Of a stretch of 64,000 nucleotides of DNA, positions 154 through 29,037 are shown in pieces. Location of the stretch: assembly GCF_001194135.2 (NCBI RefSeq), contig NC_068984.1, forward strand, positions 140,564,046-140,628,045. Reading direction: 5' to 3'. Numbering within the stretch: the stretch's first letter is position 1; each line of letters begins with the position of its first letter. The notes under the pieces are model-generated. The model was not told where the DNA came from, ran no database searches, and was given only the letters and a program-made list of their open reading frames with translations. The stretch comes from Octopus bimaculoides. Lineage: Eukaryota. A program made the position numbers and the translations under genes.

Positions 154-29037
<28,884 letters not shown>

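Follow-up and report, generated by a model that had tools for sequence, protein, structure and literature searches.

The window analysed here, a stretch of DNA of 64 000 nucleotides, carries an Argonaute (AGO) gene in which the third residue of the catalytic tetrad is Asn in place of Asp. The question raised by this locus is whether the replacement is an error or a sign of decay, whether it is repaired in the transcript, or whether it marks an AGO that has been maintained without the capacity to cut its targets. The evidence set out below makes it probable that the gene is a conserved D-E-N-H, non-slicing AGO paralogue derived from a lineage-specific duplication, with a sister copy that has D-E-D-H.

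With human AGO2 as the query, tblastn placed 20 coding segments in collinear order on the + strand (2204-29034), and splice sites were picked by reading frame and fit to AGO2. The AGO-clade gene (154-29037, + strand) was found to have the following 21 exons inside the window, with the ATG located upstream of the window's 5' end:

154-288, + strand: exon 1, a Pro/Gly-rich N-terminal extension, joined in frame to exon 2
2226-2427, + strand: exon 2
3173-3293, + strand: exon 3
4418-4599, + strand: exon 4
5233-5369, + strand: exon 5
7841-7975, + strand: exon 6
8528-8615, + strand: exon 7
9518-9601, + strand: exon 8
11184-11247, + strand: exon 9
11643-11714, + strand: exon 10
13192-13239, + strand: exon 11
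14930-15052, + strand: exon 12
15822-15955, + strand: exon 13
18341-18525, + strand: exon 14
19899-20058, + strand: exon 15
21350-21440, + strand: exon 16
22425-22619, + strand: exon 17, containing the Glu finger and the Asn, with an AG acceptor and a GTAAAT donor
24136-24270, + strand: exon 18
25519-25620, + strand: exon 19
27678-27877, + strand: exon 20
28929-29037, + strand: exon 21, ending in a TAA stop codon

Every junction is a canonical GT-AG, and all 21 exons are open with no internal stop codon or frameshift. The first of them includes PPGG-like repeats that precede the conserved AGO core. The partial protein model of 899 aa, which lacks only what lies towards the start codon beyond the window, could be aligned without gaps to residues 23-859 of human AGO2 (1424 bits), and the next-ranked alignments were to AGO1, AGO3 and AGO4. 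Identity to human AGO2 is ~73% (tblastn per-exon values and the gapless alignment), and the closest database proteins, with 81-84% identity, are the argonaute-2-like proteins of Lingula and annelids. Pfam domains scoring above the curated cut-offs were ArgoN (76-206), ArgoL1 (216-266), PAZ (282-405), ArgoL2 (415-460), ArgoMid (470-550) and Piwi (557-857). Judged by this N-L1-PAZ-L2-MID-PIWI order and by its full-length similarity, the gene is an intact miRNA-class AGO of the AGO1-4/ALG-1 type and not a PIWI or WAGO gene.

The sequence at 22581-22604, TTC TAT AGA AAT GGT GTC AGT GAA, encodes FYRNGVSE in frame. The codons for the tetrad and for the MID 5'-phosphate pocket, named after the equivalent residues of human AGO2, are as follows:

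21390-21392, + strand: GAT, D597 equivalent, the first catalytic Asp, in GADVTH
22494-22496, + strand: GAA, E637 equivalent, in HRKEII
22590-22592, + strand: AAT, Asn at the third tetrad position, D669 equivalent, residue 709 of the partial model
27825-27827, + strand: CAC, H807 equivalent, the catalytic His, in YYAHL
18522-18524, + strand: Y529 of the MID 5'-phosphate pocket
19907-19909, + strand: K533 of the pocket
19943-19945, + strand: Q545 of the pocket
20006-20008, + strand: K566 of the pocket
20018-20020, + strand: K570 of the pocket

The tetrad is D-E-N-H, which departs from the D-E-D-H/D of slicer-type AGOs, and the residues of the 5'-phosphate pocket (Y529, K533, Q545, K566, K570 and R812) are identical to those of human AGO2 in six of six cases. 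A sequence-only reading of this DNA had reported the AAT codon in exon 17, the retention of the other tetrad residues in GADVTH, HRKEII and YYAHL, an intact Y, K, Q, K, K pocket and an undamaged reading frame; the exon model and the gapless AGO2 alignment agree with it on each of these points, and R812 is retained as well.

At the D669 position, Asp was found in nearly all of ~125 AGO-family proteins and of 41 exon homologues from metagenomes; the other residues were Gly in vertebrate AGO4-type sequences (the AGO4-type exons with Gly are L035, L036, L038 and L043), a single Thr, and Asn in a pair of divergent paralogues. The divergent AGO paralogues of other animals with Asn at this position are L040 (JGI Ga0126339_10008697; coordinates 1923-2135) and P0111. 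The surrounding motif has decayed in these sequences (FYRNGVSKGRF and MYRNGITNEKF), whereas it is fully kept in the window AGO, and from their sequences they appear to have lost this carboxylate independently.

Two comparison loci, L002 (P0001; Logan SRR11869391) and L001 (P0002; ENA assembly ERZ21867824, contig ctg123225l), also have AAT at the tetrad codon, which was therefore seen in three assemblies including the window. The exon 17 protein was found on two Logan contigs. The L002 exon peptide is 100% identical to that of the window and the DNA is ~81% identical over 900 bases including introns, and because the DNA identity is only ~81%, L002 was assigned to a related species. In L001, the exons alone align with the window (~80% identity), intron positions are the same and the protein identity is 90% over exons 13-18. 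Over 284 codons compared between the window and L001, pS was 0.77 (saturated) and dN was 0.063, with dN/dS far below 0.1. The saturated synonymous sites and low dN therefore indicate that strong purifying selection has held the Asn over a long period of divergence, and, on these sequence comparisons, the Asn at the tetrad predates the split of the species compared.

Exon peptides of a third cluster (P0003, P0006 and P0007) have a 13-residue motif with Asp, encoded by GAT, at the same position. The Asp-type loci are L045, L003 and L046, and the GAT codon was seen in L003 and L045. L045, the locus of P0007, lies in ENA assembly ERZ21867824 (contig ctg109435l; exon coordinates 9989-10183), and it has YRDGVSEGQF. 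L001 (Asn) and L045 (Asp) are on separate contigs of this one assembly, and the two contigs share a transposable element of ~3 kb (77-86% identity) located in different introns. This is consistent with L001 and L045 coming from one genome, the basis being the shared assembly accession and repeat family rather than linkage. A Doryteuthis pealeii AGO cDNA primer (Alon et al. 2015, PMC4384741) matched the end of L045 exon 17 at 24 of 24 positions, and on account of this match the assembly is considered squid-like; L003 and L046 had 23 matching positions, L001 had 22, and 19-20 were found for the window and for other animals. A tetrad-intact paralogue is thus present beside the Asn type in a squid-like assembly, and the lineage with both paralogues is most likely the coleoid cephalopods, the window itself being probably of octopus origin. 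The database searched, which is too sparse for such an absence to be informative, gave no Asp-type MID or PIWI exon of a species close to that of the window.

The relationship between the two types was examined using the 176 codons common to all sequences, over which dN was 0.055 for the window and L001, 0.071 for L001 and L045, and 0.084 for the window and L045; against the two animal AGOs taken as outgroups (L047 and L048) it was 0.11-0.15. These distances give ((window, L001), L045). Seven derived residues occur in both types but in neither the outgroups nor human, and five are common only to the two Asn-type sequences, namely D539E, E542D, T551K, Y552F and D709N (partial-model numbering). 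Four of these changes are in one stretch of the MID domain:

~18440-18490 (approximate, within exon 18341-18525), + strand: 15-residue MID segment bearing D539E, E542D, T551K and Y552F

The MID motif ending in YLKNKF was found only in the Asn-type orthologue among 103 AGO MID exons in the database. The simplest tree is one in which a lineage-specific duplication would have been followed by the change from Asp to Asn in one copy before the species represented by the window and L001 separated. Unique changes numbered 8 and 6 in one comparison and 10 and 4 in another (Asn and Asp type, respectively), and a faster evolution of the Asn-type copy was not significant. Relaxed constraint in this copy was rejected on these relative-rate counts, which thus offer no separate indication, through a loosening of selection, that its function has changed. 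The equivalents of exons 13 and 16 each gave two tandem tblastn matches in the outgroup locus L047 (coordinates 1690-2018 and 7821-8088), one of the pair being the more divergent, which may reflect exon duplication, mutually exclusive splicing or a fault of assembly.

Published accounts of the AGO genes of cephalopods and other molluscs were also consulted. Two AGO2-like RefSeq proteins of 906 and 814 aa are listed for Octopus bimaculoides (PMC11114477 supplement), and the 899 aa partial model together with a short first exon fits the 906 aa entry. Two AGOs have been described in Euprymna scolopes, with octopus credited with only one (PMC8125070). Molluscs have been reported to be without an siRNA-class AGO and without Dicer-2, and the AGOs of freshwater snails have been reported as all DEDH. 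No published description of a cephalopod AGO tetrad, and no paper devoted to AGO editing, was found in the literature searched.

As the window is part of a draft assembly with many gaps (N runs at 12294-12399, 17188-17197, 26713-27331, 32443-32685, 33198-33776, 49010-49922, 51194-51510, 58304-58313 and 59771-60032, three of which are in introns of the AGO gene and none in its exons), an assembly or sequencing error at 22590, or a mutation private to the individual sequenced, has to be considered. However, the same AAT occurs in two assemblies from other species that were built from different data, making this explanation scarcely credible, and the refutation by assembly error that the sequence-only reading had allowed for fails on the orthologue comparison. 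A decaying duplicate, that is, a pseudogene in the making, would fit the loss of a catalytic residue in a gene that has a redundant paralogue, but decay is difficult to reconcile with 21 of 21 open exons with canonical splice sites, with constraint of this strength across a saturated divergence (dN/dS far below 0.1), or with a protein that is still 90% identical to a distant orthologue and ~73% identical to human AGO2, and it is considered very improbable. The claim that a single G-to-A change from GAT separates the codon from a catalytic one stands, as the sister paralogue has GAT. Two corrections apply: the change is old, fixed and selectively maintained in one paralogue and is not a recent disabling hit, and a second AGO with the canonical DEDH is retained in the lineage, which makes the Asn less surprising.

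What the Asn does to catalysis can be predicted from engineered proteins. Human AGO2 D669N serves as a catalytically inactivated ("cat-dead") protein (PMC9154749), PDB entry 5T7B carries the 11-residue motif with D669N, and in TtAgo D546N, which is altered at the homologous position, the scissile bond is intact in ternary complexes (PMC5587774). By analogy with these precedents, which lend weight to the earlier proposal of a guide-binding but slicer-dead AGO, the encoded protein should bind guides and targets without cutting. After the duplication, AAT would have replaced GAT and become fixed in this copy at the PIWI RNase-H site, where the codon specifies the third of the metal-binding residues, along with a few substitutions in MID. 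The Asn-type copy would then load small RNAs, as expected from its undamaged PAZ, MID and 5'-phosphate pocket, and would repress targets without cutting them in the manner of vertebrate AGO1 and AGO4, with the sister copy retaining D-E-D-H and any slicing role. The parts of this scheme that we infer are the loss of slicing, from the engineered D669N and D546N proteins, the division of labour between the paralogues, and the taxon. An Asn-type enzyme that still slices, with the Asn carbonyl oxygen serving as a ligand for the divalent metal and cleavage being reduced or metal-dependent, could explain why D597, E637, F676, H807 and the whole 12-residue motif have been kept here when the motif has decayed in other Asn-bearing AGOs (P0111 and L040). 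However, this motif serves structural purposes as well, independently of catalysis, D669N is used in human AGO2 precisely as a non-slicer, and the scissile bond survives in the TtAgo D546N complexes, such that residual slicing appears distinctly unlikely.

Recoding by A-to-I editing is very common in coleoids, and the codon is a single A-to-I step from Asp, being AAT and not AAC in all three species. Deamination of A22590 by ADAR would convert AAU to IAU, which is read as Asp, so that all transcripts or a part of them would encode D-E-D-H and slicer competence would be determined at the level of RNA. In squid, two A-to-I sites have been validated in an AGO transcript, the cDNA having G at 24% and 94% (Alon et al. 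2015, PMC4384741), and the validated amplicon, which begins just 3' of the tetrad codon, corresponds to the very next exon (window coordinates 24136-24243). In longer pre-mRNA folds, 22578-22598 was predicted to pair with 22889-22911 in the intron in an exon-intron duplex of 13 + 5 bp, with A22590 opposite a U at the helix end. However, the intronic partner adjoins a repeat edge and has no aligned counterpart in L002, a close relative; the duplex was rejected as an editing complementary sequence, being unconserved and probably a chance pairing. In mRNA and short pre-mRNA folds, A22590 is in the loop of a hairpin (pairing probability ~0.03) that is absent in L001, and this local hairpin was likewise rejected as an ADAR substrate. 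No double-stranded structure was found to be conserved among the species that share A22590. In L001 the target A is preceded by G (CGG AAT), and a 5' G is the least favoured ADAR context. The edited squid transcript is, moreover, of the Asp type by primer match and not of the Asn type, and, as a DEDH paralogue is present, there is no need for rescue by editing. Transcript-derived proteins from this lineage that would show the RNA base at 22590 were not present in the database, and no AGO entry appears in the available part of the Shoshan 2021 supplements. Restoration of Asp by editing is accordingly regarded as unlikely. The larger proposal, in which the Asn codon would be an editing-controlled switch giving a slicing (Asp) or non-slicing (Asn) AGO according to tissue or condition, or in a weaker variant octopods would have lost the Asp-type copy, is improbable. 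If true, a switch of this kind would couple the massive A-to-I recoding of coleoids with their expanded microRNA repertoire, and, if octopods had lost the Asp-type copy, their sole AGO-clade protein would be non-slicing as encoded, which would bear on the poor performance of RNAi tools in these animals.

The remainder of the window was also examined. No second host gene was recognised in the 30-64 kb part, where only repeat-like open reading frames were seen, and Rfam and tRNA scans of the window found nothing. A LINE-like open reading frame (48280-50730, - strand) with RVT_1 and zf-RVT domains is broken by an assembly gap. A short interspersed repeat is present in many copies in the AGO introns and downstream (~1850-2090, 24956-25134, 58087-58231, 62956-63134 and elsewhere), and was also found in the L002 contig, the copies being 70-75% identical. 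A different repeat stops at ~22897, and copies of its terminal 24-mer are also present at 13704-13727 and at 24636-24663. Two repeats in the window have a likeness to abundant octopus SINEs, which is a lead towards the taxon.

Under the preferred reading, that of a conserved non-slicing paralogue, the single microRNA-class AGO of a lophotrochozoan lineage was duplicated, and one copy fixed exactly the substitution that biochemists use to kill human AGO2, with all else retained. As molluscs are reported to be without an siRNA-class AGO and Dicer-2, the copy that is capable of cutting would therefore decide whether siRNA-style knock-down works, and it would also decide which AGO bears the microRNA load in the nervous system. 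The tetrad codon further provides a simple and decisive test of whether catalytic residues in core enzymes of RNA silencing are ever regained through RNA editing.

Vertebrate AGO1 (DEDR) and AGO4 (DEGR) are well known as natural non-slicing miRNA Argonautes. Like them, the window AGO is a miRNA-clade paralogue with a non-canonical tetrad that is otherwise conserved and under purifying selection; unlike them, it arose by an independent lineage-specific duplication, has Asn instead of Gly or Arg, and keeps His at the fourth position. Human AGO2 D669N has the same change at the same position of a gapless alignment, in an identical local motif of 11 residues, but is a laboratory mutant, whereas the Asn in the window is natural, fixed and conserved across species. 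TtAgo D546N likewise has the third carboxylate replaced by Asn and binds guide and target, but is prokaryotic, DNA-guided and engineered.

A parallel within the molluscs is the slug Deroceras laeve, for which the published report (PMC12506671) describes AGO2a and AGO2b, one with an intact tetrad and AGO2b with a point mutation in the tetrad and predicted to be non-cleaving, and places the main differences between the two in their proline-rich N-termini. Both cases appear to involve a mollusc with two AGO2-like genes, one of them with a mutated tetrad, and a proline-rich N-terminus. The data suggest that the duplication reported here followed the split from the outgroups L047 and L048, and any orthology with the slug pair is putative. 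Non-slicing AGO paralogues are known in principle, and the AGO in the window is probably an independent natural example.
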